Virus record (IMG/VR): IMGVR_UViG_3300023179_005186 | Span: 62,001-126,000 of that record | Length of the DNA: 64,000 nucleotides | Direction: 5' to 3' (one strand) | Notes under the pieces: model-generated | What the model saw: only the letters and a program-made list of their open reading frames with translations | What the model was told of the DNA's origin: nothing | Databases searched by the model: none | Position numbers and translations under genes: made by a program | Shown here: positions 2,879 through 45,800 of the stretch, in pieces | Position numbering within the stretch: position 1 is the stretch's first letter | Layout: every line of letters begins with the position of its first letter

Positions 2879-4111
2879 TTATGATAAATTAATCTTTAAA
2901 ATATCATCTTTATGATTAAAAAAAATTATTTTAAGCTCTTCTAAAATTTTATTTTTATTATCAATATTTTCTCTATCTTCTTCATCATATAATTTGTTTA
3001 AATATGAATTTGCATATTTAATCCATTTTTCTTTGTTTTTAAATTTAGAACTCGTTTTAATAAACTGAATAGTTTTTTCTATTTTATCTTTCTCAAATGG
3101 CTCAGTCAAAATACCCTGAACTTTTTCAAATATACCATTAATTTTATCATTTGTTTTTCCAACCATCCATTTTTTTCCATTAAAATATTTACATTTATTT
3201 CTTGACATATCTACTACACAAAAATTTTTATTTTCAGGTTTCGAATCATTTAAATATAAATGTTTTGTCATATTTGGAATTATATCTTTGCATTTTATCG
3301 TTGCTAAATAATTTAATATTATCTGAATATCTATTTTATCAAACTGTTCTGCTCCATGTGCTAAAATTATATTATTATTTGTTGTACTATTTAATGTATT
3401 ATGTTGTGTATTATTTATTGTTGTATGTTTTAATTTACCTAATTCATTTTTTAATTCAGCACAATTATTTTTTAACTCTTTACAATCATTCTTTAAATCA
3501 TTATTTAAATTTATTAATTGCTTATTTTGTTTATATAATGCTGTTAAAATTAATTTTGTTTGCTCATCTATTTCTATATCCTTTATTAATTCATTTAAAT
3601 ATGCATCATCTTCTTGATGTCTTGAAACTATATTCATTGACCTTGAACATTCTTTTATATCTGTACTTATTATTTTTTCAAATTCTTCTTTATCCTCCTC
3701 TTTTATATCATCTAATATTTTACAATATTTCGATTTATGACGTTTTAATGTATCTGATCTGGAAAATATTTGTAAACAAATATCACACTGATGTACTTTT
3801 TTTACTCTTGATGTTGATTTTCTAATAGGCTGCTCATGTGTGGAGCAGTGTGGAGGTTGTGCGGAGCTTGTGTGGAGCAGTGTGGAGCAGTGTGGAGGTT
3901 GTGCGGAGCTTGTGTGGAGCAGTGTGGAAGTTGTGTGGAGGTTGTGCGGAGCTTGTGTGGAGCAATATTGATCTGGATTTGAGCTGTCAGAATCAGGATT
4001 TACATTGACATTAATTGCTTTACATGAATACTTATTATTATTTATATGTCTTTTAAAATTATATAGTCTATTAAATCCTTTCCCACAATTTGGACATAAA
4101 TGATTTGACAT
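2879..4111 (-). CDS. Two-finger C2HC/C2H2-type zinc-finger protein with coiled coil and conserved NCLDV C-terminal domain (MIGE-like ORF)
   Basis: Fingers CPNC..FNRLYNFKRH..C (aa 6-30) and CDIC..FSRSDTLKRH..C (aa 109-130), a coiled coil, and C-terminal HGAEQFDKI...HLYLNDSKPENKNFCVVD...KYFNGKKW. The architecture resembles recalled MIGE ORFs of Imitervirales. Confidence 0.75.
   Translation of the reverse strand: MSNHLCPNCGKGFNRLYNFKRHINNNKYSCKAINVNVNPDSDSSNPDQYCSTQAPHNLHTTSTLLHTSSAQPPHCSTLLHTSSAQPPHCSTHEQPIRKSTSRVKKVHQCDICLQIFSRSDTLKRHKSKYCKILDDIKEEDKEEFEKIISTDIKECSRSMNIVSRHQEDDAYLNELIKDIEIDEQTKLILTALYKQNKQLINLNNDLKNDCKELKNNCAELKNELGKLKHTTINNTQHNTLNSTTNNNIILAHGAEQFDKIDIQIILNYLATIKCKDIIPNMTKHLYLNDSKPENKNFCVVDMSRNKCKYFNGKKWMVGKTNDKINGIFEKVQGILTEPFEKDKIEKTIQFIKTSSKFKNKEKWIKYANSYLNKLYDEEDRENIDNKNKILEELKIIFFNHKDDILKINLS
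3838..3963 (+). repeat. GC-rich 10/11-bp minisatellite (GTGTGGAGCA / GTGCGGAGCTT / GTGTGGAGGTT) inside the zinc-finger gene
   Basis: GGA(G) cores at 3842, 3852, 3863, 3874, 3884, 3894, 3905, 3916, 3926, 3937, 3948 and 3959. Confidence 0.97.
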
Positions 4112-4168
4112 AAAGTATTTATATATAATAATTATATTTAAATTTTAAATATATTTTATATCAAATCC

Positions 4169-4573
4169 ATTGCTCCAACTTGGAGCAATAGTAAAAAATT
4201 ATTTAATTGGTTCGCCGATATTTATTTTATACTTGTTTTTTCTTAGTTTATATTACAAAATGTCTAACACAACACAACTTGCTCCAATTTGGAGCAAATT
4301 ACTCAAACATACACATTGTTAACTATTATACTTTTTAAATGTTAATAATATTATTTTAAATTAAAAAAATATATATGTAACTAACTTGCTCCAAGTTGGA
4401 GCAAAACTCCACACTGCTCCAACTTGGAGCAGCATCCACACAGAGTTTGTGCGGAGGTTTGCTCCAAGTTGGAGCAAAACTAATTCGTTAGCTTATTAAC
4501 ATTTATTTTTATCATTTTTTGCGTTTTTTATCAAAAAATATATAAGTATACTACTTGCTCCAAGTTGGAGCAA
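4169..4573. repeat. Cluster of six 19-bp palindromes TGCTCCAA-N-TTGGAGCA
   Basis: Copies at 4169-4189, 4279-4297, 4386-4404, 4414-4432, 4458-4478 and 4555-4573. Confidence 0.97.
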
Positions 4574-4688
4574 ATTACACAACCATACACATAGCCAACC
4601 GATATACTTTTTATCAATCTTTGTTAGAATTTATGTATAACTGCAAACTAATTTACACAAATCTCCACACAAAATTTCTTAAAAATTT

Positions 4689-4799
4689 GTGTGTGTGTAG
4701 GAGGGGTAAAAAAAAATAAAATATATTTTTTTTATAAATTTTTTTTTTATTTTTAATTTTAAAATTTTTTTATTTTTTATACTTTTATTTTTAAAATTA
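4689..4799. other. (GT)5-AGGAGGGG motif followed by a 93-bp almost pure A/T tract
   Basis: 4707-4799 contains a single C (4782) and no G. Confidence 0.85.
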
Positions 4800-4895
4800 C
4801 GAGATGATAAAAACAAAATAAAAATAAAAAATATGGTCTGATTAAGATTGCATTAATATAAAAAAATAATATATTTACATCTGATAAAAAAATTC

Positions 4896-5126
4896 AAGAG
4901 CATAAATGGTCTTAAAGATAAATAAAATATAATTTTAATGATCTGTATCATCTAAAAACAAGATTATAAAGAGCATAAATGGTCTTAAAGATAAATAAAA
5001 TATAATTTTAATGATCTGTATCATCTAAAAACAAGATTATAAAGAGCATAAATGGTCTTAAAGATAAATAAAATATAATTTTAATGATCTGTATCATCTA
5101 AAAACAAGATTATAAAGAGCATAAAT
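4896..5126 (+). repeat. Three perfect 73-bp direct repeats plus a partial fourth (non-coding)
   Basis: GAGCATAAAT recurs at 4898, 4971, 5044 and 5117, and the intervening sequence is identical. Confidence 0.97.
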
Positions 5127-5197
5127 AGTTTTGAAAATATAAAAATATCAAGCTTATGATCTATAAAATAATTTATAGAGTATATAATTTAAAAATA

Positions 5198-5734
5198 TTA
5201 TAGTTCTTCTGATATTGATATAAATTTTGTTTGATTTTCAATATCAAAATACCATCCCCATAATTTATCATCAGTTATATAATTTTCAAAATCAGATGGT
5301 TCTTTCTTATAATAAAAGTTTGAAGATTTAACAAAATATCCAAAATTATTCCTTTTAATAATTAAATTTAATGATCTAAAACTTTTTATTGTATTAATTT
5401 TCAAGTTAGTATTATTACTTTCAGATGGTATATTTTTTATTAATTGATTAAGATTATTATTAGATTTGTTAAATTTAATTTTTGAGTTATTTTTTTTTTT
5501 ATAAAATATTGATTTAATCAAATTATTTAATTTTATCAAAATAATAAAACCAATAATACTAAACAAACACCAAAAATCTAAATTAATTAAATTTTTTTGG
5601 TTTTTGTATAAATATAAAATAATATATTTAATTAATTTAAATATTGTGAAAAAAAGTATAACTGTATAAAGTAAAATTTTTTTATTATTTAATATATAAT
5701 CTATTATGTTAATTAAAATAGTATTTTTATTCAT
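5198..5734 (-). CDS. Hypothetical membrane protein
   Basis: 178 aa ORF with two hydrophobic segments; no recognised family. Confidence 0.55.
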   Translation of the reverse strand: MNKNTILINIIDYILNNKKILLYTVILFFTIFKLIKYIILYLYKNQKNLINLDFWCLFSIIGFIILIKLNNLIKSIFYKKKNNSKIKFNKSNNNLNQLIKNIPSESNNTNLKINTIKSFRSLNLIIKRNNFGYFVKSSNFYYKKEPSDFENYITDDKLWGWYFDIENQTKFISISEEL

Positions 5735-5838
5735 AACATTTATATTAATTCTAATAATAAGTATTAAGATTAATTTTTTAATTAAAAAAGATATTATAAT
5801 ATTTTTTTTTTTACAGATAAATAATTTATCAAATTTTT

Positions 5839-7137
5839 TTATTCTTCATTATAGAATAATGGCTTTGGAAAAGCATATCCACTTAATATAGCTTCTCTAC
5901 TATCAGCTGTAGCATAAACAGGATATGGAACATTAACATTAAAGTTATTCATTTCAAGATCATGTTCTCTTTGTTTTTTGTTAAATTCTTTAATAATTTC
6001 ATGATCTTGCATAATTTTGCATTCACCAAGAGCAGAAAATGAATAATAATTATCATCGCCATCAATATTAGAAACTCTTTTTGATGGTTGAGCAGCACAA
6101 TCATAATCATAATCAAAGTTATTAGTATAATAACCATCAATAAAAATATATTCAATAGCAACTTTTTGAAGAGTATTAATACCTTGAGGTTGGGTGATTG
6201 AACAATCTTTTGTCCACATATTAACACATTCTCCAGGATCATTTATTGTAACAAAATGTACAGTAATTTTAAGTTGATCTGAAACAGATTTAAGAATTTT
6301 TTTGATAACAAAAGAAACAATATATTTAGTTTGAGCTTCAGTATATTCTCTAGTCATACTAATAATATCAATAAGTTCTACAGGTGAGTTTGGTGGAGTA
6401 TCTGCATATAAATTATAATCAACTCCGATTTCTTTATAAAATTTATTTATACCTTTATCTTGAACATATTTAGAATCTTGTGAAGTTAAAGGTAAATAAT
6501 TATTATAATTATTAATAATTTCAGCATTTTCAGGAAGTTGTTTGACTTGTTCATTTAATTTATTAAGAAATTGAGCAACTAATTTAATAAATTCAAATGG
6601 TGGGTAAGGATTTGTAGCTTTAGGATTATAAATAGTAGTTGTTACAGGTAAAGTTTGTAAATTAAAGAATGATTTTTGATCAGGACAAATATAATTAAAT
6701 GCAGTTAGAATATCTCTATAAGCATCATTAAATTGTGATTCAATAAAAAATTTATTTAATTTTTTACATGGAATAAGAGATTTTGTTTTAGTTCTAGACT
6801 TCTTTTTACTTTTTTTAGATTTAGATAAATTATTTTCATACATATTATAATTATGCATATTTAGTCTTCTAGCAAGATCTGAAGAATTAATAACATTGTT
6901 AGAGTTTTCATCGGACATCAAAGGTAAAGTATTAGCTCCAAGTATTTGACTGTTATCAGGTATATTTGCACCTAATTGTGCTTGACTCAATCCTTTCACA
7001 AAAGGATTAGTAATATTAATATATGGTTCTTCTTTATCTACATTACAATTATTCATAGATTTATTAGAAAAGGTTGTATATATTTTAAAAATTACAAGTA
7101 TGATTAATACAATTAATATAATTCTTATCCAATGCAT
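5839..7137 (-). CDS. Hypothetical protein with N-terminal membrane anchor
   Basis: 432 aa ORF, MHWIRIILIVLIILVIF anchor, typical codon usage. Confidence 0.75.
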   Translation of the reverse strand: MHWIRIILIVLIILVIFKIYTTFSNKSMNNCNVDKEEPYINITNPFVKGLSQAQLGANIPDNSQILGANTLPLMSDENSNNVINSSDLARRLNMHNYNMYENNLSKSKKSKKKSRTKTKSLIPCKKLNKFFIESQFNDAYRDILTAFNYICPDQKSFFNLQTLPVTTTIYNPKATNPYPPFEFIKLVAQFLNKLNEQVKQLPENAEIINNYNNYLPLTSQDSKYVQDKGINKFYKEIGVDYNLYADTPPNSPVELIDIISMTREYTEAQTKYIVSFVIKKILKSVSDQLKITVHFVTINDPGECVNMWTKDCSITQPQGINTLQKVAIEYIFIDGYYTNNFDYDYDCAAQPSKRVSNIDGDDNYYSFSALGECKIMQDHEIIKEFNKKQREHDLEMNNFNVNVPYPVYATADSREAILSGYAFPKPLFYNEE

Positions 7138-7217: not shown

Positions 7218-10200
7218 TTAATAATAGTATTCTCCCGGTGAAAGAACATTGTCTTTAATCATTTTTTGTATATTATCTCTAAATTGGTAATTAGAATATA
7301 TATCAAATCTTCCTTCTTCATCAAGAATTTCATCTCCCATATCATATCCTTGAGTTTCCTCATAATCATCATATAATTCATCTCTACGTCTTTTTTGTTC
7401 ATCTTCGGATAATTTAGTAAATTCTTCTTCAGCATTAACTTGTTCATAATAGTCTATAGCATCTAATAAAATATCTGCATTTTGTGTTTCTATATAAAAT
7501 TCAGAAGCATATCTAATTTGATGATAATAATTAAATTCTTTATTATGATAATATACTTCATAATTATAAGTATTAAATAAAATACAAATAATATCAATAA
7601 TAAAGTGTGCAATATTAGTTTTATTTGCTTTATTAGTATTATATTCAAGTAAACGCATAAATTCATCTAATATATAATTTAAAACAAAATTACCGATAGT
7701 GTCATTTTTAATTATATAATTATAATCAATATAATTAGAGAATTTAAGTTGATTATTTTTATTAATTTTAATACTAAAAGGTAAATAAGTGATTATATCA
7801 TTTATATATTTAAGAAATGTATGTGTATTATTTTTATCAGTAATTTCAGTTTTAATATCAGAATCAATTTTCTTCTGATATTTAACATATAAAACATCAA
7901 TTGGATTATTCGAAGGATCAGGATATGAAACTAATTGGTTATTATTAGGGTTAATAAACTCTACAATTTCCAAGTCTACTTTATATTTATATTTAAATCT
8001 GTTAATATATTTATTTAATTCTATGCCTAATTTTTTAATAATTTGAAATCTTCTAATACAAACTTTATCAATAAAATCTTTCATTGAAAAGTATTTATTA
8101 TTAATAAATTTATCATTAATATCTTGTTCAGTCATACCATACATTTGTGGATACATATCTTTAATATTAATTTGTTGTCTAGTAAGACCAAATAATAATA
8201 GCATATTTTTAATAGAATAATTAATTGTAAGTTTACAATTATTTTTTTTTAAATTAATATATTCTTTATTTACTTCACGATAACCAAGAAGATTTTTTTC
8301 TAAGAAATCATAAAATAATTCATATTTAGTATTTCTTTGCATAGTATAAACTAACACGTTTCTTTTAAAATATGGATGATTTTCTATTACTCTAAATTTA
8401 TTTTCTTTTTCATATATTTGAATAGGTTTATCTAATTTGGTCCCATTGTAATCATGATCAATAAAATAAATATTGTAATGTAAATTGTATACATTATTAT
8501 TAATAATAATATCAATACCTAATAATTTTTGAATGGTATCTAAAATTATATTGATAGATTTATTGATATCATTATCATATTTTTGAAATTTATACATAAT
8601 TTTATCAAATATTTTTTTAACTTTATTAATTTCATTAGAATTACTTGTTTTAAGATCTTTAATATATTCTGATATTTTATTATTAATATGTTTTTTTTTT
8701 TCTTCAATAATATCAAACATTTTAAATAATTCTTTATCAGTGTTAAGAATAGGTGATCCTAAATGATATTTACATTTAGAACAAATACTAATATCTTTTT
8801 TCGTGTCATAGTCAAATTGATGAATATTACCATTAATGCAATATTTATTAGCTAATTTACGCAGATATAGAATAATTTGTCTTTGATATAATAATTTAAT
8901 ACTATCTGTAATTAAATTTTTAGGATTTACTTCTTCTTTACATCTAGAACAAATAAATGTTATTCCATTATGTTGAAAATTATGAAAAGGTCCATCAATA
9001 CAATTAGTTAAATTAGAAATTTGATCAATTTCAACTAAATATTTAGAACGATATTTATAAATAAATTTTTCCAATGAGAATTTTTTATAAAATTTATTAT
9101 AAAGATCATCAAAATAAAAATTATTAAAAATATTATTATTAGGAATTAAATCATATTTATTAGAGTCTATTGATAATTGTTTATCATCTTTATTTGAAAT
9201 AATTTGTAAATACATTTTATCAAGTTTTCTAATTAATTCAGTATCTTTAAAAAGATCTAATTTAAAATAATATTTAGTTTGAAGTACTTCATATACATAA
9301 TATTTATTTTTTTTCATTTCATCTGAATCAACCAATAAAATAGTATTAAATATTTCAACAAAAGTATTAATTATGCTTTTTTGAAGAACAACTTTATGTG
9401 CATTGAATTTATTTTTATCAGAAATTTTAACTTCAGATGATAGATCAATCCAAATATTATATTGAGTCATTAAACAACTAGTTAAGTAAATGATATAACA
9501 TAATATTGGATATTCTTTGATACTTACATAATCACCAGATTTATTGATGATAATTTTAAGATTATCAAAAAGACTAAAGCCAATTTTTTTAAATATATAA
9601 TATGAACAAAATTTATTATTCGTTAAAACTTGAATTTGTGTATCATTTAATTCAAAAATAATGTTTAATAAAATGTAACATAATACATTATTATATTTAA
9701 TAATTTTGTAATAATCTTTATCTTTACTAGAATAAATAAATATATCATTTTTAAGTTCAAAAATAAAAAATATAGAAGATGCTTTATTTATACCAAATTT
9801 TTGAATATAATCATCTCTATGACTTTGATATTCTTTTTTTAAATAATTATATTGTACTAATACTAAATCAATTACATCTTTAACAAGATTTCTTCTTCTA
9901 CTTCTTATTTGTGAAGTTGATCCTTTAAGACCATGTAAATTAAATATTGAAGCCATACGTTCAATGATTTTATCAATATTTCTTATGGATGTTTTATATT
10001 TTTCATATTCTGGTAATTCTTCAATATTAACATCCATTTGTATACTGAATGTAACAAAAAAATTAGTATTTGTATCAAATTGTCCATCTTGGATATATTT
10101 TTTAACATTAATAGGTGCCTTACAACTTTTACATATATAATCAAGATTGGTACTAACATCAACATATTGTTGAATAAATTCATAAACAAGATCAGAATAT

Positions 10201-12371
10201 TTAATATTATTATTTTTTTGAAGTTCACCAATTTTATCCCATGAAATATTATGTTGACAAATACCTTCAATATATTCTTTATCTTTAATATCATAATCTT
10301 CTTGTTCAATTTCACCTTCTTTAATTAAAGAAGGAGCTTCATTAATTAAATCTTTTTTTTCAAAATCTGGCGTAACACTTAAAACAGGAATTGATGGATA
10401 TTTTTTTTTAGGTGCATTAGGTAATTTTTTAACATCTCCATATAATCCGGGAAATTCATCTTCATTATAATCATATGTATCAGATATTTTAATAGATTTA
10501 ACGTAATAAATTAAATATTCTAATTCATTTAATTCTTTAGAATGTTGTGGATAAGCAATTTCAGGATATATATGTTTATATTTATCAAGATTATCAATAT
10601 AAGTAGTAATTAATTTAGGATGTGAAGTATTAATGTCTTGTTTAATAACATCAATAACAGTTTCAATTAAATAATCATATAAATATGATGTAATTATTTT
10701 AACAACTTCATTTTTTGACATTGAATCAGAAATATCATAAAAAGGAATATTGTATTTTTGTTTAGATAAATCAAATAACCAGAAATAGTTATTATCTAAA
10801 CTTTCATTTTTAGTTTTTTCTTTAGATAATATTTTTTGTTTAATTTTATAATTAATTAATGTTTTAATTGAATCAAGTGGTTCATCAGTTTCATTAGTAA
10901 TATTAATGAAAGTATTTAAATTTAAACAATTCAATTCATTTAATTCTTTTTTATTAATAATAGCAAAACCAATTATATTCACCAACATATCATCTGACAT
11001 AATTCTAGTTTGCAATACATCAAATTTTCTTTTATTTAATAATGAAACTGAAGAATTTCTTATTGCATCAATAGTTTTATTTGATGAAAAAATAAATCCA
11101 TTATTCTTAAAATCTTTAAAAGATATATATGGATAAGCTCTATATGTTAATAAATCATTGACTAAATCTAAATTTTCAGAATTCATTTTAATAATATTTT
11201 TTTGTTTAGAGATAATTTTAATATCTTCATATGTATTAATTAAAACAGCATTAGAATCTTGTAAGGGTACATAAAATAATTTTTTTATTTCATTAGGATT
11301 TTTATAAAGTTCTGAAACAGTATTAATTTTATTAATAATATATTTTATTTTAGTTTCATCTTTCTTTTTTGGAGATTCTACTTTATCACCATGTTTTTCA
11401 TATTTTTCATTATCTTTATGATATAATAAAAAATCATCAACAATTGGTATGAGTATATGAGTATCTAATAATTTTTGAATTTTAATATCATGATCAGTAA
11501 AATATTTTCTTTTTTCATTAATATCTTCTGTATAGTCTTCATTAATTAAATCAAAAATTTTATCTGGTAAACCAGTTTTAAGATCATTTGGATTTAAAAT
11601 AGCTTCAATATCATTATAATCAATATAATCACTACGAGGAACAACAACATCTATAAACATAAAATCTCCATTTGAAGTTTCAGTATTTTCAATAATATTA
11701 AAAATTTCATTTTTTTCTTTATCTTTAAAGATAATTAATTGTATCATCATAATTGTTACACTATGATCAACAATAATTTTATTTTTTTCATCAAGAAGTT
11801 TATCTACAATATTTTTTTTAATATTTTCTTCACCAATTTTATCAATAAATTCTTTAAGTAAATATGAATAATTATCTAAAAGATTAGCATTTTCTTTTTT
11901 AGATTTAAGTTTATGTAAATAATCTAAAAATTCAATGATTAAGTTAATAGTTTTAATAATAATTGAATTAGATTCAGTATTAAAAAAATTTTCAATTTTA
12001 ATTTTAAAATTTACTTGATTTCTACTAAATTCGATAAGATTATTATTAAATAACTCTATTTTTCCAGTATAATTAATTCCAATCATTATGAACAAATAAT
12101 AACACAAAAATTTAGTAATAATACTGTTTATTAGTATTATGTTTTGTTTTTTTGTTACTAATTTATTAATTTTATCATTAGGAATAATTGATTGTGAAAA
12201 TTCAAGAATATCATTAATTTGTTGTTGATATTTTATAAAGTTAACTTCTTTAATTATTTTTTTAAATTCTAAAAGTTTAGTATTTTTGGAATTTAAAATC
12301 CATATTCCCATAAAGTTATTTAAGGTTTCATTTAATATATCATCAATTTCTGAAATATACATTATTTTCAA
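7218..12371 (-). CDS. Large hypothetical protein with three C..H/CxxC putative Zn-binding motifs and an acidic C-terminus
   Basis: 1717 aa ORF; CQH..CKSC, CIDGPFH..CSRC and CINGNIH..CSKC motifs. Confidence 0.8.
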   Translation of the reverse strand: MKIMYISEIDDILNETLNNFMGIWILNSKNTKLLEFKKIIKEVNFIKYQQQINDILEFSQSIIPNDKINKLVTKKQNIILINSIITKFLCYYLFIMIGINYTGKIELFNNNLIEFSRNQVNFKIKIENFFNTESNSIIIKTINLIIEFLDYLHKLKSKKENANLLDNYSYLLKEFIDKIGEENIKKNIVDKLLDEKNKIIVDHSVTIMMIQLIIFKDKEKNEIFNIIENTETSNGDFMFIDVVVPRSDYIDYNDIEAILNPNDLKTGLPDKIFDLINEDYTEDINEKRKYFTDHDIKIQKLLDTHILIPIVDDFLLYHKDNEKYEKHGDKVESPKKKDETKIKYIINKINTVSELYKNPNEIKKLFYVPLQDSNAVLINTYEDIKIISKQKNIIKMNSENLDLVNDLLTYRAYPYISFKDFKNNGFIFSSNKTIDAIRNSSVSLLNKRKFDVLQTRIMSDDMLVNIIGFAIINKKELNELNCLNLNTFINITNETDEPLDSIKTLINYKIKQKILSKEKTKNESLDNNYFWLFDLSKQKYNIPFYDISDSMSKNEVVKIITSYLYDYLIETVIDVIKQDINTSHPKLITTYIDNLDKYKHIYPEIAYPQHSKELNELEYLIYYVKSIKISDTYDYNEDEFPGLYGDVKKLPNAPKKKYPSIPVLSVTPDFEKKDLINEAPSLIKEGEIEQEDYDIKDKEYIEGICQHNISWDKIGELQKNNNIKYSDLVYEFIQQYVDVSTNLDYICKSCKAPINVKKYIQDGQFDTNTNFFVTFSIQMDVNIEELPEYEKYKTSIRNIDKIIERMASIFNLHGLKGSTSQIRSRRRNLVKDVIDLVLVQYNYLKKEYQSHRDDYIQKFGINKASSIFFIFELKNDIFIYSSKDKDYYKIIKYNNVLCYILLNIIFELNDTQIQVLTNNKFCSYYIFKKIGFSLFDNLKIIINKSGDYVSIKEYPILCYIIYLTSCLMTQYNIWIDLSSEVKISDKNKFNAHKVVLQKSIINTFVEIFNTILLVDSDEMKKNKYYVYEVLQTKYYFKLDLFKDTELIRKLDKMYLQIISNKDDKQLSIDSNKYDLIPNNNIFNNFYFDDLYNKFYKKFSLEKFIYKYRSKYLVEIDQISNLTNCIDGPFHNFQHNGITFICSRCKEEVNPKNLITDSIKLLYQRQIILYLRKLANKYCINGNIHQFDYDTKKDISICSKCKYHLGSPILNTDKELFKMFDIIEEKKKHINNKISEYIKDLKTSNSNEINKVKKIFDKIMYKFQKYDNDINKSINIILDTIQKLLGIDIIINNNVYNLHYNIYFIDHDYNGTKLDKPIQIYEKENKFRVIENHPYFKRNVLVYTMQRNTKYELFYDFLEKNLLGYREVNKEYINLKKNNCKLTINYSIKNMLLLFGLTRQQINIKDMYPQMYGMTEQDINDKFINNKYFSMKDFIDKVCIRRFQIIKKLGIELNKYINRFKYKYKVDLEIVEFINPNNNQLVSYPDPSNNPIDVLYVKYQKKIDSDIKTEITDKNNTHTFLKYINDIITYLPFSIKINKNNQLKFSNYIDYNYIIKNDTIGNFVLNYILDEFMRLLEYNTNKANKTNIAHFIIDIICILFNTYNYEVYYHNKEFNYYHQIRYASEFYIETQNADILLDAIDYYEQVNAEEEFTKLSEDEQKRRRDELYDDYEETQGYDMGDEILDEEGRFDIYSNYQFRDNIQKMIKDNVLSPGEYYY

Positions 12372-17115: not shown

Positions 17116-18006
17116 ATGGATACTTTTTGGATAAATAATCCATCTATAATATTTAAAGATTATTATCAAATAATTCCAAGTAATTCGATGAGTAGAATAA
17201 AGCAAATGAATACTATGACAAGATTTTTTATATATTTCGTTATTTTATGTATATTATTCAAATCAAGTGAAAATTTTTTATTATTTGGAATAATAGCAAT
17301 TATGTTAATAATTGCATTTTATTTTATATATAAAACAGATTTAGTAGGTATACAAAATGATTTAATTAATGAAAATCTAAATGAAACTGAAAAATTTGAA
17401 AATCTAAATTGTAATTCTTGTGAAAATGATTATAAAAATTTATTAGATAAAACAATAATAGATATTTATGATAAAAAAAAAGATCAAATTTTAAAAGGAA
17501 CAGCAAAAACAGATAAGGATATAATATTAGAATCTGGTTATATTGATTCAGATGGTAATTATAAAATTGGTAAAGATTATTCAGATATAAATTTAGAACA
17601 ATGGAAAAAAGAACAAGATAAATTAAATAATAAAATTTCTTATGATAAAAATCAGCTTTATATTAATAATACCTGTAGAAAACCAACTGTCGATAATCCA
17701 TTTACTAACATAGTATTTAGTGATTATTTAGATTCTTCAAATATTGCTGAACCATGTAATATTGATAATAAAAATGTTCAAACTGATATGCAAAATTTAT
17801 ATAACAGCTCTATCTATAGAAATATTGAAGATGTGTTTGAAAGAGAAAATTCTCAGAGAATGTTTTATACAGTACCAATTAGAACTGTACCAAATGATCA
17901 AACCGAATTTGCTAACTGGTTATATAAATCTAGTCCTACATGTAAAGAAAATTCTCAAAACTGTACTTATTATGAAATACCATCAATGTCTTCACAAAGA
18001 TATTAA
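17116..18006 (+). CDS. Conserved NCLDV membrane protein of unknown function
   Basis: FWINNP...MNTMTRFFIY, two TM helices, CRKPTVDNPFTN and SQRMFYTVP..PNDQ.EFA.WLY..CK; a pattern I recall as widespread in NCLDVs. Confidence 0.75.
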   Translation: MDTFWINNPSIIFKDYYQIIPSNSMSRIKQMNTMTRFFIYFVILCILFKSSENFLLFGIIAIMLIIAFYFIYKTDLVGIQNDLINENLNETEKFENLNCNSCENDYKNLLDKTIIDIYDKKKDQILKGTAKTDKDIILESGYIDSDGNYKIGKDYSDINLEQWKKEQDKLNNKISYDKNQLYINNTCRKPTVDNPFTNIVFSDYLDSSNIAEPCNIDNKNVQTDMQNLYNSSIYRNIEDVFERENSQRMFYTVPIRTVPNDQTEFANWLYKSSPTCKENSQNCTYYEIPSMSSQRY

Positions 18007-18030
18007 TCATTATAAAAAAGTGATAAAATC

Positions 18031-18109
18031 ATATTACAACTAAAATTATATTACAACTAAAATTATATTACAACTAAAATTATATTACAACTAAAATTAT
18101 ATTACAACT
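18031..18109. repeat. 17-bp tandem repeat (4 full + 1 partial) duplicating the 3' end and stop of ORF 18097-19155
   Basis: ATATTACAACTAAAATT at 18031, 18048, 18065 and 18082, partial at 18099. Confidence 0.95.
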
Positions 18110-19155
18110 TTATTAGGAATTTTTCTTGCAAATACAGAAAATCTAAATATATCAAGAGGACTTGTCTCATAAAAAGGAAATGCGTCAAATAATGTATAAC
18201 CATCTTTTAAGTATGTATCAATTGAAGAATCTAGTTGATCAACTCCATAAATATGATTATTTTTTGATTTATATAGTTCTAATGCATATTCACCATTAAA
18301 AAAAGTTGTTCCAGTTGAAGTAGCTAGACGATTACCATTACTATTATTTGGATTATTAGGGTCATACATAAATATAATAGAATTAGATGGTAAAATACTT
18401 TCACTAGTAGTTTTATAAATATAATAAGCTTGAGCACCAGGAAATTTTTTTAAAAAATTAGGTAAAATTGGTAGACCAGTATAATCTAATGGATTATCTA
18501 AACCAGTGGACCCAGTAGCCATAGATGAACCATTTAGATCAGAAAAATTTGTAAAATTTTCTTGCAAGTTTATTAATTTTAGTTGACCTTTTTGTAAAAT
18601 AATAGATTGAACCGGTGTACCATCTAATGTTAAATATGGATTATTTGGTTGCATTTGAATTAAATTTACAATAAAATTAATATCAAGTTTTTGACCATTT
18701 TCAGTTAAAACATTAATTAAAAAGAATGATTTATCATAAGTTTGTGTTTTTTCAACAATAAGTTTAATAGGTTTAATAGTATAAATCATTTGGTTGCCAA
18801 AAATTTGACTACCATTTAAATTAGCTAAATATTCACCGTATGGATTATAAGGTTGATAAGGATCATATGCAAATACCCATGTATTGGTAGTTAACATATA
18901 ACTTGCAGAATCTCTAACAAATAATAATTTTGCTCCTGGATATTTTTTTATAAAATTATAAATTAATGAAATATCAGGTTTGTTATCAGAATAAGTATTA
19001 ACAAGACCATTTAGTCCATCATAATCATTTAAATTATTATAATTTTGAGTTAAATTAAAATTATCAATAATTTTATGGTCTTTAAAAAATATTAAATAGA
19101 AAATTATTAATAAAAATATTATATATAATAAATTAAAAATTTGTTGTTCATTCAT
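18097..19155 (-). CDS. Hypothetical protein with N-terminal membrane anchor and internal duplication
   Basis: 352 aa. Two similar blocks: FIKKYPGAKLLF..WVFAYDPYQPYNPYGEYLA and FLKKFPGAQAYY..IIFMYDPNNPNNSNGNRLA. Confidence 0.75.
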   Translation of the reverse strand: MNEQQIFNLLYIIFLLIIFYLIFFKDHKIIDNFNLTQNYNNLNDYDGLNGLVNTYSDNKPDISLIYNFIKKYPGAKLLFVRDSASYMLTTNTWVFAYDPYQPYNPYGEYLANLNGSQIFGNQMIYTIKPIKLIVEKTQTYDKSFFLINVLTENGQKLDINFIVNLIQMQPNNPYLTLDGTPVQSIILQKGQLKLINLQENFTNFSDLNGSSMATGSTGLDNPLDYTGLPILPNFLKKFPGAQAYYIYKTTSESILPSNSIIFMYDPNNPNNSNGNRLATSTGTTFFNGEYALELYKSKNNHIYGVDQLDSSIDTYLKDGYTLFDAFPFYETSPLDIFRFSVFARKIPNKVVI

Positions 19156-25696: not shown

Positions 25697-28558
25697 ATGG
25701 ATATAGCAATAGGAAGTGGTTTAGGTATATTCGGTAACTTAATAAATAATAATTCAAATTATAAAGAAAAAACTATTAATCCTCAATTTAATTATGAACA
25801 ATCTTATCCAATAAATTATTTAAATAATTATGAAAGTGATATTTGGAACACGAGAGATAAAATATTATATAATACAATAAGTGATTTATATAAAAAATCA
25901 GAAGATGATAGTAAAATAGTAAGTAATATTTGGAGAATACAGAATGATAGTATAAGTCAAATTAAAAATAAAGAAATTAATAATTTATTAAATAATGATA
26001 TAAATATGATAAAAAATATAGGAAGTAATAATATAGAAAGTATGAAAAATATAAATGATATTAATTCTGATTCAGATAGTATATTTTCAGATAATTTTTC
26101 TTTGCCAGAGTATATACCTGAAAATAAAAATTTAAGAAAAGTTAATATAAATGATAATATATCAGAATATTCTGATAGTGTAGATTCAAGACCAAATATT
26201 AATACAAGAGTTTTAAATACTCAAGATAAATTTTTAGAAGATATTGTCTCAAATTTATCAGGAAAATCAAATGGATTATCAGAATCAAAATCATATGCTT
26301 CAGATAATTGTACTACATTTGAAAATCAATTTAAACCATTAGAATTTAATCATAGCGGTATTCCGGGTACTTTACCGAGTACTAAACAAATATTAAATAT
26401 TTTTAATGATAAATTACGTTTTAATCCACAATCAAATTTTAATCCAGAATCAGATGGTAGATATGGAGTAACGTCTGATATGACTCATGATAACATGCAA
26501 CCATATTTTAAATCAAAAACTTATGGTTTTAATCCTGAATTTGATAAAGAACAAACAAATTATGCTGTTAGAAAAGTAGAATTATTTACAGGATCTGATC
26601 AAAACCCACAATTTAAACACAAAACAGATGTACCTTATTTATTTCCTCCAGAAATTGGTAAAATTGAATCTGTTACAGGAGTGCCTAATTTTTCTGATTT
26701 TTTTGAATCTAGAGTAATACCATCCGATAAAAGACAAGGAGAAAGACCATTTCAACCAGTTAGAGTAACACCAGGTTTAAATTTAGGTTATAATGAAATA
26801 GGTAATACTGGATATCAAGATTTATATAGAGCTTTACCAAAAAATGTAGATCAATTAAGAACAGTTGATAATCCAAAAGTTTCATATCAACCACCAGTAA
26901 TTGTAGGTCAAAAGGGTGATCGAAGAGGTGCAATTGGTAATTTTATTCAAAAGGGTCCAGATAGATTTTATGAACAATTACCAAATTCATTTATGCCACA
27001 AATAGGTGATTTTATAGCTCCTGCTATTTATGGTAAACATTTAAAAACAGTAACTAATCGAACATTAAATCCAGATAATCCTCATTTAAATCCAGTTAAA
27101 TCAGATGTTGATTTTGCAACACCAGAATATCTTTGGGGTCAATATAGAAAAACATTTAAAAAAACATTTGATTATGATGGTCCAAGAAACGTTCAAGAAA
27201 ATACTCGTGGTCAAATTATTAATCAAGAAACATACGTTCCAACAAGTACCCAAAGAGAATCTATGCCTGAATTAGATTTATCAAACATTAAAGGCAATTA
27301 TATTTCAGTACCATTAAATAACTATATGAATTTTGTTCCTGAAACAACTCTGCGTGAAATAATGTTAGAAGATAATGGACGAAAAAATTTAACAAACGTT
27401 TCAAATTCAATTAAAAGTTATTTATTTAATGCTGTAAATTCGGTTCCTGATGAAACTTTAAGATCAATTTTAACTGAAAAAATTATTTTAACAAATGTTA
27501 AAGAAAATTCTGAACGTGGATATTTATTTAATAATAATAATGCTATTCAAGATACAAATATGAGAAATTTATCAGAAGATAATTTAATTTTAGGTGTTTT
27601 ATCTAATAAAGAACAAGGATATTTATTTAATAATATAAATGCTATTCCTGATACTAATCTAAGAAATCTAGTAAATACTATGTATGAAAGAGGTGGTTTT
27701 GGATTTCAAGGTAATCACCAAGAACAATATATGTATAATTATAATAATGCAACTCCTCAAAGTAATTTAAGAAATTTCACTGAAGATCAACAAAATATTG
27801 TTGGAACAAAAGGTAATCATTTAGAAAATTATATATTTAACTATGCAAATGGTATAAGTGATGCAAATTTAAGAAATATAATTGAAGATCAAAAATATAT
27901 TATAGGTGCTAAGGGAAATCATCAAGAACAATATGCATTTAACTATGATAATGCAATTCCTAATACTAATTTAAAAGATTTAACTGCTGATCAAAAAAAT
28001 ATTATTGGATCTAAAGGTAACAGTATAAAGCAATATAATTTTAATTATGAAAATGGTACTCCAAATACAAGTTTAAGAGAATTAACTGCTGATCAAAAAA
28101 ATATTATAGGCACAATTGGAAATAAATTTGAACAATATAATTTTAACTATGATAATGCTACACCTGATGCAACAATGAGAGTTTTTTCAGGTCCACAAAA
28201 GAATCTAATAGGTTCTAAAGGTAACGGTACTGGCACAGTTAATTTTAATTATAAAAATGGTACTCCTGATGCAACAATGAGAGTATTTTCAGGTCCACAA
28301 AAGAATATTATAGGTACACAAGGTGATGGAACACAATCAAGATCAAGATTAGATGCAGATAATGCTTATTTAAATGTATCAAAAGAAATAGTTGCTGAAG
28401 GTAGAGATCCAGTTCCAGTAAAAGAAAATCGTGGTCCAACAACACAATTTACAGAATATGTTTTTTGTGATGATTCATATTATCCAAAACAAATTTTTAG
28501 TAGTGTAAGACCTTTATCAGCAGTACAAAATGAATTATATACTTTTTCTCAAGAATAA
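25697..28558 (+). CDS. Conserved NCLDV protein with C-terminal 34-aa repeats
   Basis: VELFTG, GERPFQPVRVTPGLNLGY and LPKNVDQLR..NPK core; about nine Y.FNY.N..P...LR....QK..IG.KGN repeats. Confidence 0.8.
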   Translation: MDIAIGSGLGIFGNLINNNSNYKEKTINPQFNYEQSYPINYLNNYESDIWNTRDKILYNTISDLYKKSEDDSKIVSNIWRIQNDSISQIKNKEINNLLNNDINMIKNIGSNNIESMKNINDINSDSDSIFSDNFSLPEYIPENKNLRKVNINDNISEYSDSVDSRPNINTRVLNTQDKFLEDIVSNLSGKSNGLSESKSYASDNCTTFENQFKPLEFNHSGIPGTLPSTKQILNIFNDKLRFNPQSNFNPESDGRYGVTSDMTHDNMQPYFKSKTYGFNPEFDKEQTNYAVRKVELFTGSDQNPQFKHKTDVPYLFPPEIGKIESVTGVPNFSDFFESRVIPSDKRQGERPFQPVRVTPGLNLGYNEIGNTGYQDLYRALPKNVDQLRTVDNPKVSYQPPVIVGQKGDRRGAIGNFIQKGPDRFYEQLPNSFMPQIGDFIAPAIYGKHLKTVTNRTLNPDNPHLNPVKSDVDFATPEYLWGQYRKTFKKTFDYDGPRNVQENTRGQIINQETYVPTSTQRESMPELDLSNIKGNYISVPLNNYMNFVPETTLREIMLEDNGRKNLTNVSNSIKSYLFNAVNSVPDETLRSILTEKIILTNVKENSERGYLFNNNNAIQDTNMRNLSEDNLILGVLSNKEQGYLFNNINAIPDTNLRNLVNTMYERGGFGFQGNHQEQYMYNYNNATPQSNLRNFTEDQQNIVGTKGNHLENYIFNYANGISDANLRNIIEDQKYIIGAKGNHQEQYAFNYDNAIPNTNLKDLTADQKNIIGSKGNSIKQYNFNYENGTPNTSLRELTADQKNIIGTIGNKFEQYNFNYDNATPDATMRVFSGPQKNLIGSKGNGTGTVNFNYKNGTPDATMRVFSGPQKNIIGTQGDGTQSRSRLDADNAYLNVSKEIVAEGRDPVPVKENRGPTTQFTEYVFCDDSYYPKQIFSSVRPLSAVQNELYTFSQE

Positions 28559-29491: not shown

Positions 29492-29499
29492 TCAATTTT
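29492..29499 (-). promoter_or_regulatory. Early promoter AAAATTGA upstream of TBP
   Basis: Exact octamer about 34 nt upstream of ATG 29458. Confidence 0.7.
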
Positions 29500-29540
29500 T
29501 TATATAAAAATATATTAAAATATTAATATATAATACTTTA

Positions 29541-29966
29541 ATGGATGAAAATATTATAATATTAGCTAATATGAAAAATTCAGATAATTCAAAAAATAAT
29601 TCGTCATCTTCTTCATCTTCTTCATCTTCTTCATCTTCTTCAAATAGTTCATCTACTTCTTCAAATAGTTCATCTACTTCATCTACTTGTTCTAATAGCT
29701 CATCTTCAGATACTTCATCAAATTCTTCGGATAGTTCATCTACTTCAACTACTTGCTCAGTTAGCTCTTCTGATAGCTCTTCTGATACATCAGATGAGTT
29801 AACAGAATTTATTGAAACTGGATCGTATAGTATATTTTCAACTAATAAAAATGTTACATTAAATTCAAGTAAATGTAAGACGATGGATGAACAAATGGAA
29901 AATATTTTAAGTAAATATTCGAATATAAAAATAAAGTTAAATAAATTATGGAACAAAGTACATTAA
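29541..29966 (+). CDS. Ser-rich low-complexity hypothetical protein
   Basis: 141 aa; the antisense acidic ORF 29492-29956 is the alternative reading. Confidence 0.5.
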   Translation: MDENIIILANMKNSDNSKNNSSSSSSSSSSSSSSNSSSTSSNSSSTSSTCSNSSSSDTSSNSSDSSSTSTTCSVSSSDSSSDTSDELTEFIETGSYSIFSTNKNVTLNSSKCKTMDEQMENILSKYSNIKIKLNKLWNKVH

Positions 29967-42878: not shown

Positions 42879-45800
42879 TTAATTGTTTGATATAAATAAT
42901 AATCCTGATAATCCAGATTGATACCTAAGAATATTATATTGGATAGTTGTTAAATTAATTTGTGCAGAAAATTTACCTAAATCAAACAATGTTTTGGTAT
43001 TACCAAAATAATTAAGTAATCCTTTTTTATCCATGATAATTTGTATTGAAAAAATTCTAGTTGTAGTTAGATTAATAGCTCCAGTTGGTTGAAAATCTTC
43101 AGGTTCTAAAGCAAAACTATAAACATTTAAATTAGTATTAACTTTAGCTCTAGTATTATATTTATATTGATTAAGAATAGTAGTAATTCCATTATAATTA
43201 TTTGAACTTAAATTATTTACTCCATCTCTTCTAGCTCCATCTAAATAGAATTTAGTGTTTAAAATAAAATCATAAATATTATAACTTTTTTCATTAATTT
43301 TTTTATAATTATTTGGTGTAATTTTATTATAATTTAAAAAGAATGTTAATTCCCAAATTATTTCTTTAACTAAACTATTAATATCAAAATCAAATTGTAG
43401 GGTAATAGTATCATCAAATTGATTTACAAAATAATCAAAGTCTAATGTTCTGATATAATTTCCATGTGTTTCAATTAAATTATCAATAGCTTTTTCACAT
43501 ATTATTTTTCTTTCGTCTCTTTCAACAAATATAAAATCCATATTTAGTGCTGAACTAACATTAAAAGGTATTAAATAATTGATAGCTATAGAATCTTTAA
43601 AAATATTTTTAGAAGAAAATAATGCATCAATTTTAATATTAGTATACATACATGCAATTAATGGTATAGCATTACTAATACCTTGAAAAAAGAAATTTAA
43701 TGGAATATAAAAATTTTTATTTCCCATATGAACTATCCAATTAGTTAATCCAGTGGTTAAATAAGATTCATTATCACCAAGAGTATTAATTCCTAACATT
43801 TCAACAATTGCTTGATAAATATTAAGATTAACATTTAAATTAATAAAAATTTTGTACATTTGTTTATTTAAAAAATCGATTTGTTGATCATCAAAATTTA
43901 AATGAAAATATTCAAATATTTTGATAATACCTAATTCATTAATATAACCTCCGTTTATTTCTTTAATATAATTCATATAATCATTAGTTATATTAAGTAA
44001 TGAATTAAATTCATAAATACTTTTCATTTGTTTAATCACTTCACATTCATTAAAATCAACACAAACACCTAATAAATATTTCCAAACATTAGTTTTATTA
44101 TTCTTAATATAAAAGTTAGTTTCTTTTGATTTAAGGTAACTATTTAATAATTTAATATTATTAGGTGTATTAACACTAATTTGTCCATTAAAAGTTTTAA
44201 TATTAAAAAGTACTGAATCGTTAATAATATTTTCATTAACATATAAATTATTGATAACAATATTTGAAAAGAATTCTTGGCAAATTAAAATAAAATTAAG
44301 ATTATCGTAAACATTAAATAATATATTATTAAGACCATTAAAAAATTTATTAACTTGTATAAATTCTAAATCATCTTCAATATTAGTATCTGTTAAACTA
44401 ATAAATTCCATATATTTAATAATATTTGTATTAATTAGATTAGCAAAAGTATAAATGATATTATCTAAATCATTTGTATACCTATTTCCATAAGTAGATA
44501 ACCATGTTAAATAACAATTATAATAAAATAAAATAATTATTAGGTCATTATTGTTTAGAGAATCAATACCATTATATATTAGTGTAAATATAGTAATAAT
44601 ATTTTCATCAAAAACAAATGATTTGCCATTGAATAAAGTTATTATATTTGAAGTTGATAGATAAATATTATCAAATTTATTAGAATAACCACCAAGTATA
44701 TTTTTAAATGTATCTAAATTTTGTTTGATATTTTGTAAAATATTTTTAATAACTGTTGTAGTATAAAGAATTGGTTTATTATTAATAGAATAAAATTTAT
44801 TTACTTGACTACTATAGTTATTTATTAATCCATTGATAGTGTTATTAATAATTGTTGAACTAATTGAATTCTCTTCAAATATTTGTAATTCATTAGTATA
44901 ATTATTATAAATTTGTATACTAAAATCATCTAAATTATTTTCTTGTTCGATAAATGTATTTATTTTATATTTAGTAATATCTTTTATAGTGTCATCTTGT
45001 ATTGTTTTATAAAAATTATTAATAATATTTTTTTTAATAAAATTTTTATTGATAAAATCAAGAAATGTAGCTGGACTAGAAGAAATATCTAAAGTAATTA
45101 TTAATTTACCAAAATAAATAAAAGTGTTACATGATAATAATATATTGTTAAAAATATTATAGTAATCTTCGATATTAATATATCTATTAATTATAGTAGT
45201 AGACATTATTCTATATAATATTTGTAGTTTAGGTATGTTATTAATAAAAGTAGTATAATCATAATTGCTACCTTCAAAAGAAATATTTAAATCTAAATTA
45301 ACAAAACTGGTATAAGAAAAATAAAAACTATAAAAAATTATTTGTGAATCTAAGAATTTATTAAGTCTTTTATCAAAACTATTATGATATAGAATACCCC
45401 ATAATGTTTTTTTTAAAACATTAAATAATGTTTCAGTAAAATAAATTGATTCTTCAATTCTGGTACCTATATAATTAAATTCTTGTTCAAATATCAATTG
45501 ATAAATAGTTTTGAAATCTATATCAACATAAGTATTATTTTGAAAAACACGAAATAAATATAAAAAATAATTTGAATATAAATCAACATATTTATTAAAT
45601 AATTTATTAGTAATATCCTCATTTAAAAAATCAAAATATTGAAAAATAATAGAGGTAAAATTATTAAAATTTAATATAAAATCTTTTAATTCAAAATTAT
45701 TATTTGCAAAATCGTAATATTTAAAAATAATATTTTCCCAATATTTTTTCCAAATTAATTCAAGATTATATTCAATACTATAGTCATTTATATAATAAAT

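Follow-up and report, generated by a model that had tools for sequence, protein, structure and literature searches.

How does a mobile-type element of a giant virus recognise itself? The question is raised by a gene in the 64-kb stretch of DNA analysed here (the window), from a contig in IMG/VR, which encodes a protein with two zinc fingers and in which both the DNA upstream of the gene and the DNA between the two finger-coding segments are packed with the short motifs that those fingers are predicted to read. A first-pass annotation of the sequence had noted that the linker between the fingers is encoded by an array of predicted binding sites, and had inferred that the protein binds inside its own gene, either as an autoregulatory roadblock or as a Rep/iteron-like self-recognition module of a selfish element. 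Our analysis confirms that observation and places it in a context that the annotation had missed, namely that the gene appears to be the single ORF of a MIGE-type element (Major Interspersed Genomic Element) in what is probably a Mimiviridae-like giant virus. Self-recognition is well supported by covariation between the fingers and the motifs, whereas the binding itself and its outcome remain inferred.

Anatomy of the element

The ORF at 2879-4111 on the minus strand encodes 410 aa, arranged as finger 1, a disordered tether, finger 2, a coiled coil, an N-rich stretch and a conserved C-terminal domain, and it gave two zf-C2H2 hits in a Pfam search (34.2 bits against a cut-off of 25.2) and 55 homologues. 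Finger 1 (4022-4096, minus strand; CPNCGKGFNRLYNFKRHINNNKYSC) has the ligands C6, C9, H22 and C30, and finger 2 (3722-3787, minus strand; CDICLQIFSRSDTLKRHKSKYC) has C109, C112, H125 and C130 and is preceded by a basic stretch RKSTSRVKKVHQ. In the AlphaFold model the recognition helices start at L16 and S119, such that residues -1, 3 and 6 are R, N, R in finger 1 and R, T, R in finger 2, as the first-pass annotation had stated, with Y and D at position 2. The predicted triplets are thus GAG for finger 1 and GTG(G/T) for finger 2. Both fingers are modelled with confidence (pLDDT 81-93 in 10-residue block means for finger 1, with a beta-beta-alpha fold and a helix at 16-24, and about 92 for finger 2), and the profile matches DNA-binding C2H2 fingers in the PDB. 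The 78-aa tether between them, encoded by 3788-4021 (minus strand), is predicted to be disordered (pLDDT 31-34 over residues 40-102) and corresponds to the hypervariable region of the family alignment. A long helix at aa 183-230 (3422-3565, minus strand; pLDDT about 91) is probably a coiled-coil oligomerisation segment. The C-terminal domain (about aa 245-410; 2882-3379, minus strand) is of unknown function, although D301 and R304 are invariant across both subfamilies, and 123 cluster representatives were found in 1.84 billion proteins. As the whole-protein model was too poor for this domain, it was refolded alone with a deeper alignment (pLDDT 86, pTM 0.82), but no Pfam family, no PDB sequence match and no PDB fold match (best E 2.1) was obtained. 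Matches in BFVD were to C2H2 proteins of many Mimiviridae and, weakly, to D5-like primase-helicases, and involved proteins of AaV, PoV, ChoanoV1, klosneuviruses and, weakly, CeV (one CeV-01B protein, E 0.09). The neighbouring gene encodes asparagine synthetase, which has been called characteristic of Megaviridae (PMC4669402).

The DNA encoding the tether contains an array of twelve 10-11-bp units at 3838-3964 on the plus strand (GTGTGGAGCA, GTGTGGAGGTT and GTGCGGAGCTT) with a GTGYGGAG core, hereafter motif B, which comprises the predicted finger 2 site (GTGG core) with an adjacent GAG, and its G-rich strand is the template strand. The hexamer GYGGAG has 11 exact hits between 3840 and 3962, spaced 10-11 bp, the twelfth unit being GTGGAA at 3925-3930, and with further hits at 4407-4412 (minus), 4451-4456 (plus) and 4663-4668 (minus) contributing, the window total is 22 against 3.07 +/- 1.74 in shuffles, with 0 of 100 shuffles reaching 22. 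The 8-mer GTGYGGAG occurs 14 times in the 64 kb, all within 3700-4720. Tandem Repeats Finder reported a period of 42 bp x 3.0 at 96% match, with a basic period of 11 bp x 11.9, and the array reaches 59% GC in a gene of about 20% GC, within a genome of ~20% GC. The core is read in all three frames, indicating that the repeat is a DNA-level feature, and an allele in the same 90% cluster lacks exactly 14 aa, equal to 42 bp. However, the 11 in-gene hits are copies of one expanded repeat and not 11 independent events, and the statistical weight therefore comes from the comparison with paralogues.

Upstream of the gene lies a 1086-bp ORF-free stretch (4112-5197), with gaps of 370-720 bp in homologues. 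Six 19-bp palindromes TTGCTCCAAnTTGGAGCAA, which the first-pass annotation had not listed, are present at 4170, 4279, 4386, 4414, 4459 and 4555 (4170-4573; 6 matches, 0 expected) and constitute motif A, the predicted finger 1 sites, with GAG in each half-site (TTGGAGCAA). The half-site TTGGAGCA falls 12 of 16 times inside the element. Copies of motif B are interspersed among the palindromes (4407-4457), namely CTCCACAC at 4407-4414, a degenerate copy at 4434-4442 and GTGCGGAGG at 4449-4457, and a further copy at 4662-4672 (minus strand; TTGTGTGGAGA on the gene strand) lies 16 nt downstream, in gene orientation, of a conserved ACACACACACAA box at 4687-4698 (minus strand), 587 nt before the ATG. 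The three upstream sites of the first-pass annotation belong to a conserved layout of box, unit and palindrome array. The box has a single match in the window and occurs exactly once per locus, always on the gene strand, in 16 loci, and the position next to it holds each paralogue's own unit. On the 5' side of the box is an almost pure A/T stretch (4699-4835; 5% GC over 96 nt) that reads like a DNA-unwinding element, and the mean GC of this stretch is 9.7% in 16 elements against 23% for the loci. Further out, a 73-bp tandem repeat x 3.5 (4896-5148) carries AAGACCATTTATGCTCTT-type motif pairs (motif C) and is probably the distal non-coding part of the element; similar motif pairs lie upstream of the box in seven paralogous loci (loci are designated here by L numbers: L012, L016, L017, L018, L019, L021 and L057). 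Rfam and tRNA scans of 3000-6000 showed nothing above threshold.

Covariation between finger residues and the motifs of each element

To determine whether linker repeats in homologues vary independently of the finger residues, which would have refuted the first-pass interpretation, we compared 18-19 paralogous elements and found that they do not vary independently. The order of A/T stretch, box, unit, motif A array, ATG, finger 1, array and finger 2 is conserved in 16 loci, yet each element has its own motifs, which recur in its own tether DNA. As a longest-common-substring measure was swamped by A/T runs, GC-containing 8-mers were used instead, and each linker shared these with its own upstream region far more than with others (88 against a permuted mean of 14.7; 0/20000 permutations). 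In 15 of 15 elements with R or K at -1 and R at +6 of finger 2, the GNG triplet predicted from residue +3 (N to A, H to G, T/S/A to T) is the commonest GNG in that element's own linker DNA, and three of these cases were predicted before the DNA was retrieved. Two of the 15 calls were narrow (L012, 5 to 4; L019, 20 to 19), and the GNG-count test was designed after part of the data had been seen. The states switch several times on the tree of the C-terminal domain, for example between the sisters L012 (N, GAG) and L057 (H, GGG). With Asp at +2, the base after the triplet is G (GAGG, GGGG, GTGG), which would be in keeping with a target-site-overlap contact.

Finger 1, in contrast, tracks a second, promoter-proximal motif, as its predicted triplet is found in the top repeated 7-mers of the element's own proximal region in 12 of 16 elements, against a permuted mean of 5.15 (0/20000), and fails in the other 4. 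L057 and L058 share the finger 1 residues KSHD and the motif TTTCGGTCA although their C-terminal domains sit in different clades. The two fingers do not generally read one composite hexamer of the kind that the first-pass annotation had predicted (GYGGAG), although in this window the two motifs overlap (TGGAGCA), so that GTG-GAG does look composite. L009 and L011 are 87% identical up to the box, which forms the left junction, and 93% identical in the C-terminal domain, with no similarity between, so the cassette of sites plus fingers moves as one block. L019 and L020 lie on one contig and have different motif sets.

These tests are not fully corrected for relatedness or for recombination between cassettes. 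Elements with S, Y, T, R in finger 2 (L008, L014) share a motif (TTTGCAG) that the standard code does not predict, and some family members (L007, L009, L011) as well as the whole second subfamily lack a linker array, so that the intragenic array is not essential to the family. In the second subfamily (40 elements) the finger/motif test was uninformative, as its fingers carry N, S or T at the contact positions, which predicts A/T-rich triplets in an A/T-rich genome.

A predicted self-addressing module and its alternatives

We consider it likely that finger 1 reads motif A and finger 2 reads motif B using the ordinary -1/2/3/6 contacts, and that oligomers then coat about 0.9 kb from the box to the middle of the gene. 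In this model the element carries a self-addressing module that separates this copy from its paralogues, and the placement of sites between the two finger-coding segments keeps reader and sites genetically inseparable. The near confinement of both motifs to the element within the 64 kb, the 10-11-bp spacing of one copy per helical turn, and the occurrence of the upstream motif in either orientation, which fits duplex DNA sites, are supportive of this hypothesis. On the other hand, single fingers usually bind weakly, and the last zinc ligand is a Cys with unusual spacing (H-x7-C in finger 1). Likely consequences, which are inferred, are autorepression through the operator-like palindromes and an intragenic roadblock, as well as marking of the element in cis for whatever the C-terminal domain does at the conserved A/T-rich/box segment.

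A more specific version of this model, which we regard as possible but tentative, is that the A/T-rich stretch, the box and the phased arrays form an iteron-type replication origin, with the zinc-finger protein as its initiator recruiting the viral primase-helicase through the C-terminal domain, either for genome replication or for selfish local over-replication. The layout matches theta-plasmid origins, with a DUE-like stretch of 5-18% GC, helically phased direct repeats and, in many paralogues, inverted repeats around A-tracts, and the C-terminal domain has fold matches to D5-like primase-helicases. However, these matches are weak (E 0.03-0.2) with unknown aligned regions, there is no Pfam or PDB support for the domain and no replication evidence of any kind, and the elements sit at syntenic positions in related viruses, as a plain resident gene would also do. 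Here we speculate that MIGEs might be self-contained initiator-plus-origin modules whose specificity cassettes are swapped between copies to stay orthogonal, as plasmid incompatibility groups do; if so, they would be the first candidate replication origins/initiators, or selfish over-replicators, described for Mimiviridae, as well as a natural, rapidly diversifying zinc-finger/target code. A role solely as an autoregulated transcription factor, which represses its own promoter, blocks elongation at the array and may also regulate other viral genes, is comparably uncertain. The palindromes lie 59-460 nt upstream of the ATG, the array lies 150-270 nt inside the transcribed region on the template strand, and a coiled coil allows dimer binding to the palindromes. 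Yet if every paralogue's sites are private to its own locus, pure autoregulation leaves the protein with no function to regulate, the C-terminal domain, the box and the A/T stretch are left unexplained, and the family is multi-copy with orthogonal specificities.

The remaining alternatives seem improbable. Homogenisation at the DNA level alone, through gene conversion between the upstream repeats and the array, is permitted by the geometry, as the upstream copies are mostly inverted relative to the array and lie 0.4-0.9 kb away, but conversion cannot make the central base of the motif follow residue +3 of finger 2 or the proximal motif follow finger 1, and the upstream patches are only 8-18 nt long. 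The array could also be merely a slippage-prone low-complexity linker that matches the finger code by coincidence, given that the tether is disordered and hypervariable, that alleles differ by whole 42-bp steps and that P/S/T/Q/H-rich linkers in an A/T-rich genome are expected to be C/A-rich on the coding strand. This reading is disfavoured by the recurrence of the same unit beside the box in each paralogue, differing between paralogues, by the finger 2 covariation with its prospective cases, and by the fact that a 10-11-bp unit read in three frames is not a peptide repeat. Least likely is a function at the RNA level, in which the fingers bind the element's own mRNA, the 5' leader pairs with the array region, or the palindromes are Mimiviridae-type hairpin termination signals for the upstream gene. 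Although the palindromes score as terminator-like hairpins and as sub-threshold miRNA-like hairpins, some C2H2 fingers bind RNA, and most box-adjacent units are complementary to the array, L019 and L058 carry that unit in the same orientation as the array and the code-matching strand is the template strand, which is absent from the mRNA. Moreover, six identical terminators 0.6-1 kb beyond a stop codon are not expected, and the terminator reading was rejected because in many paralogues (L018, L014, L012, L008) motif A is a direct repeat in the same position and not a hairpin.

Comparison with known systems

MIGEs have been known since 2013 as multi-copy elements of algal and protist giant viruses without a known mechanism, and consist of a single ORF encoding a zinc-finger protein preceded by non-coding DNA, present in several copies per genome in Mesomimivirinae-type giant viruses, with the mode of spread unknown (bioRxiv 10.1101/299784; PMC4669402). 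Here, one zinc-finger ORF is joined to 1.09 kb of non-coding DNA. Only one copy is present in the 64-kb window, and a protein-pattern scan of IMG/VR returned only the window itself, but paralogues occur twice on one 61-kb contig (JACCDO010363952) and a sister subfamily with the same box occurs six times on a 244-kb contig. We found no description of the ACACACACACAA box, the element-specific site arrays, their match to the fingers, the intragenic array or the cassette exchange in the literature that we examined, although it cannot be excluded that parts were noted in the original description (PNAS 2013).

The element, whose binding sites are predicted, is built like an iteron/initiator unit of RepA_N plasmids (pSK41, pAD1 type). 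In pSK41 the Rep boxes lie in the linker-coding centre of rep, the central protein segment that they encode is only a linker and is dispensable, an N-terminal DNA-binding part is combined with a conserved C-terminal part that contacts the replisome, and the pPR9 chimera exchanges the DNA-binding domain plus origin between conserved flanks (PMC5703833), a pattern also shown by L009 and L011. RepA_N iterons are described as inverted repeats converging on a poly-A tract (PMC7145576). This is an analogy of design and not homology, as the DNA-binding unit here is two zinc fingers and not a winged helix, no RepA_N domain was found in the Pfam search, the host is a eukaryotic giant virus and not a Firmicute plasmid, and predicted sites also lie upstream. 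If binding holds, this would be a rare case in which the sites of a DNA-binding protein are embedded between the segments that encode its reading heads, a design otherwise documented for RepA_N plasmid initiators.

With Zif268/EGR1-type fingers the protein shares the C-x2-C-x12-H spacing, the predicted beta-beta-alpha fold and, as inferred from covariation only, base recognition through helix positions -1, 3 and 6 (and 2). The fourth ligand, however, is a Cys that is invariant in the family (H-x7-C in finger 1, H-x4-C in finger 2), and the fingers are single units 78 aa apart on a disordered tether and not TGEKP-linked tandem fingers, each appearing to read its own motif. One finger plus an adjacent basic stretch (RKSTSRVKKVHQ before finger 2; K/R-rich in the homologues) could give specific binding to a 5-7 bp G-rich site, possibly in the manner of GAGA factor, although there are two such units on one chain plus a coiled coil. 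Lastly, no terminal inverted repeats flank the element apart from A/T-rich chance inverted repeats, no DDE or other catalytic domain was found by Pfam, PDB sequence or fold searches, and related viruses carry the element at a syntenic position, in contrast to transposases that bind many subterminal short repeats through zinc fingers (hAT BED, P-element THAP). Nevertheless, as in those systems, short repeated sites are clustered near one side of a mobile-type element whose own zinc-finger protein is predicted to read them, and eleven of 65 family members gave weak zf-BED hits.

Zinc fingers, tether array and upstream region of the element

The ORF at 2879..4111 on the minus strand of the 64-kb window, which is part of the 315,722-bp IMG/VR contig IMGVR_UViG_3300023179_005186, encodes a protein of 410 aa. 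Finger 1 (window 4022-4096) and finger 2 (3722-3787) translate exactly as given in the first-pass annotation, and both are C-x2-C-x12-H fingers whose last ligand is Cys, with a Pfam zf-C2H2 score of 34.2 bits against a cut-off of 25.2. AlphaFold models both fingers as beta-beta-alpha at pLDDT 81-93 (10-residue block means), with helices that start at L16 and S119, which fixes positions -1,2,3,6 as R,Y,N,R in finger 1 and R,D,T,R in finger 2. The 78 residues between the fingers are predicted to be disordered (pLDDT 31-34), and their DNA holds a tandem array at 3838-3964 with a 42-bp period x 3.0 at 96% match and a basic unit of 10-11 bp. The motif GYGGAG occurs 11 times in this array and three times upstream, with a window total of 22 against 3.07 expected, and the array forms a 59% GC island in a gene of about 20% GC. 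As such, the array of predicted binding sites reported in the first-pass annotation is confirmed.

The 1086 bp upstream of the ATG (4112-5197) contain no ORF but hold features that were not noted in that annotation, namely six perfect 17-19-bp palindromes TTGCTCCAAnTTGGAGCAA, with 0 expected by chance. The palindrome half-site overlaps the in-gene unit, since both contain TGGAGCA. Further upstream lie a single ACACACACACAA box (4687-4698, gene strand), a stretch of about 5% GC and a 73-bp tandem repeat x 3.5 at 96% match (4896-5148), the latter carrying paired motifs of the type AAGACCATTTATGCTCTT and AGATGatacAGATC. Similar AGAnn-N5-6-nnTCT pairs lie 100-400 nt upstream of the box in the paralogous elements L012, L016, L017, L018, L019, L021 and L057; they are not element-specific and could represent a third, shared class of sites. 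The 8-mer GTGYGGAG occurs 14 times in the 64 kb, all inside 3700-4720, and TTGGAGCA falls 12 of 16 times in the same kilobase.

A family of elements with a shared box

Fifty-five homologues at about 40% identity were found in metagenomes, and these share the two fingers, a coiled coil, an N-rich stretch and a C-terminal domain, while the inter-finger tether is hypervariable and often made of different short peptide repeats. DNA was obtained for 18-19 non-redundant elements, all of which have 370-720 bp of non-coding DNA before the gene. Sixteen loci carry exactly one ACACACACACAA box, always on the gene strand, preceded by about 100 nt of 5-18% GC and followed by TTTTT. The published description of Major Interspersed Genomic Elements (MIGEs), which are multi-copy in Mesomimivirinae and Aquavirinae and whose mode of dissemination is reported as unknown (bioRxiv 10.1101/299784; see also PMC4669402), appears to fit these elements, although the window holds only one copy. 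In the window, the neighbouring gene (1036-2826) encodes a 596-aa asparagine synthetase-like protein, an enzyme called characteristic of Megaviridae (PMC4669402).

Scanning IMG/VR for the box also revealed it in front of a second, shorter MIGE-like subfamily of zinc-finger ORFs (loci L060-L105; 250-400 aa), which is homologous to the present one (hhalign 97.6%, E 3e-12) and has two closely spaced fingers, no linker array and its own repeated proximal motifs. Its second finger is one residue shorter and conserved, and there are six copies on one 244-kb contig and eight loci, of which L066 and L092 may be one copy, on contigs of one MAG. The C-terminal domain of the protein encoded in the window models well on its own (pLDDT 86, pTM 0.82), but has no PDB fold match (best E 2.1) and no Pfam family. 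It does match predicted structures of C2H2 proteins from Yasminevirus, Gaeavirus, Edafosvirus, ChoanoV1, a moumouvirus, PoV, AaV and Tupanvirus, as well as one GIY-YIG fusion and, weakly, D5-like primase-helicases, and a search of 1.84 billion cluster representatives gave only 123 relatives.

In most paralogues the tether DNA is a GC-enriched tandem array with a 10-11-bp unit and higher-order periods of 21, 32, 42, 53 or 63 bp, although some relatives, like the whole second subfamily, lack a linker array. The core word recurs every 10-11 bp and is read in all three frames; the repeat is therefore not a peptide repeat but a DNA-level feature, in which only the total length keeps the frame. Near-identical alleles of the window's own gene from other samples (homologues P0056-P0060) differ mainly in the array at 3838-3964, where one lacks exactly 14 aa, that is, one 42-bp super-repeat, and is otherwise identical, and two others have rearranged tether peptides while the rest of the protein is 95-100% identical.

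Covariation of finger residues with element-specific motifs

Each element's linker unit recurs next to its own box and among its proximal repeats, and the unit differs between elements, examples on the G-rich strand being GTGAGGAG, GTGAGGGA, CTGGAGGGT, TTGGGGGG, GGTGGA, TCGGAGGA and GATTTGCAG. The GC-containing 8-mers shared between linkers and their own upstream regions total 88, against a permuted mean of 14.7, and no permutation out of 20000 reached 88. For finger 2, we took the elements with R/K at -1 and R at +6 and counted GAG, GCG, GGG and GTG on both strands of the linker DNA. The triplet predicted from residue +3 (N->A, H->G, T/S/A->T) is the commonest in 15 of 15 elements, of which two calls were narrow, whereas random assignment would match about 5.9. 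We calculated the exact chance of a perfect match as 1 in 225,225, a figure that is not corrected for relatedness; the tests presented here are only partly corrected for it.

Three of these cases were predicted before their DNA was retrieved, and all three came out as predicted: homologue P0054 (R,E,H,R) has six TTACCCAAAA units, which read GGG on the other strand, P0004 (R,Y,H,R) has five ATTGCCCCAAA units plus the same unit beside the box, and P0040 (R,D,S,R) has GGTGGA beside the box and TCCACCA in the linker. On a tree of the C-terminal domain the states switch repeatedly, as in the sisters L012 (N, GAG) and L057 (H, GGG), or in L021 (H) among relatives with N. From reading the motifs, Asp at +2 seems to go with G after the triplet (GAGG, GGGG, GTGG), as the overlap rule for such fingers would suggest. 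By contrast, the two elements with S,Y,T,R in finger 2 share the motif CTGCAAAT / TTTGCAG (L008 beside its box, at 1744-1770, and L014 in its linker), and covary with each other but do not fit the standard recognition code.

For finger 1, the predicted triplet is present in the three most repeated GC-containing 7-mers of the element's own promoter-proximal region in 12 of 16 elements, failing in the other four; the permuted mean is 5.15 and no permutation out of 20000 reached 12. For example, Y,H,H,R goes with TGGTAA, R,E,H,N with TAGGTAA, Q,G,H,D with AACGAA, and K,S,H,D with TTCGGTCA, the last in two elements whose C-terminal domains lie in different clades. In the window, R,Y,N,R predicts GAG, which sits in each palindrome half-site. 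Five of 16 linkers also hold copies of the proximal motif (permuted mean 1.05; 11 of 20000 permutations reach 5). In the window the two motifs overlap, so the GTG-GAG hexamer proposed in the first-pass annotation is a plausible composite site here, but this is not general. Many of the proximal sites (motif A), considered at window 4112-4170 and the homologous positions, have the form A4-5-T(T)-NNNNN, which is close to AAAATTGA, probably the early-promoter octamer of Mimiviridae, and a conserved AAAAGTATATAAG-like word lies between the box-adjacent unit and the proximal array in most paralogues.

Cassette exchange and possible roles of the protein

The paralogous elements L009 (1140-3040) and L011 (1350-2938) are a mosaic pair, being 87% identical over about 300 nt that end exactly at the ACACACACACAA box and 93% identical over the C-terminal domain, with no detectable similarity in between. 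The stretch without similarity covers the site arrays, both fingers, the tether and the coiled coil. The sites and their readers therefore move as one block, bounded by two simple-sequence tracts, the (AC) box and an N-rich coding microsatellite. At a syntenic locus, L018 and L058 have flanking proteins that are 65-69% identical, while the element's protein is only 49% identical in the C-terminal part and about 30% at the N-terminus. In addition, two copies on one contig (L019, L020) have different motif sets.

The covariation follows the standard zinc-finger contacts, holds for both fingers, does not depend on the orientation of the upstream copies and survived prospective prediction, and neither slippage alone, nor gene conversion alone, nor RNA pairing explains it. 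Although binding data are lacking and single C2HC fingers may bind weakly, the best reading is that the protein binds private site arrays upstream of and inside its own gene, where placing the sites between the two finger-coding segments keeps reader and sites inseparable. What such a complex does is not resolved, and it might act through autorepression or as a roadblock, through origin-like opening at the A/T-box segment, or in mobility. The inferred design parallels that of RepA_N plasmid replicons: in pSK41, the Rep boxes lie centrally within rep, the peptide they encode is a dispensable linker and the C-terminal domain contacts primase, while the pPR9 chimera swaps the DNA-binding domain plus origin between conserved flanks (PMC5703833). 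RepA_N iterons are, moreover, inverted repeats converging on a poly-A tract (PMC7145576), as are many motif A sites here. However, this is an analogy and not homology, as no RepA_N domain is present.

Elsewhere in the window, a 17-bp tandem repeat x 5.1 at 98% match (TAAAATTATATTACAAC) lies at 18024-18109, between the ORFs 17116-18006(+) and 18097-19155(-). Coding repeats of 102 bp are found at 27708-28324 inside ORF 25697-28558, and repeats of 9/21/30 bp at 29604-29787 in the overlapping ORFs at 29492-29966. There are also two very long ORFs, of 3243 aa at 42879-52610(-) and of 1717 aa at 7218-12371(-).
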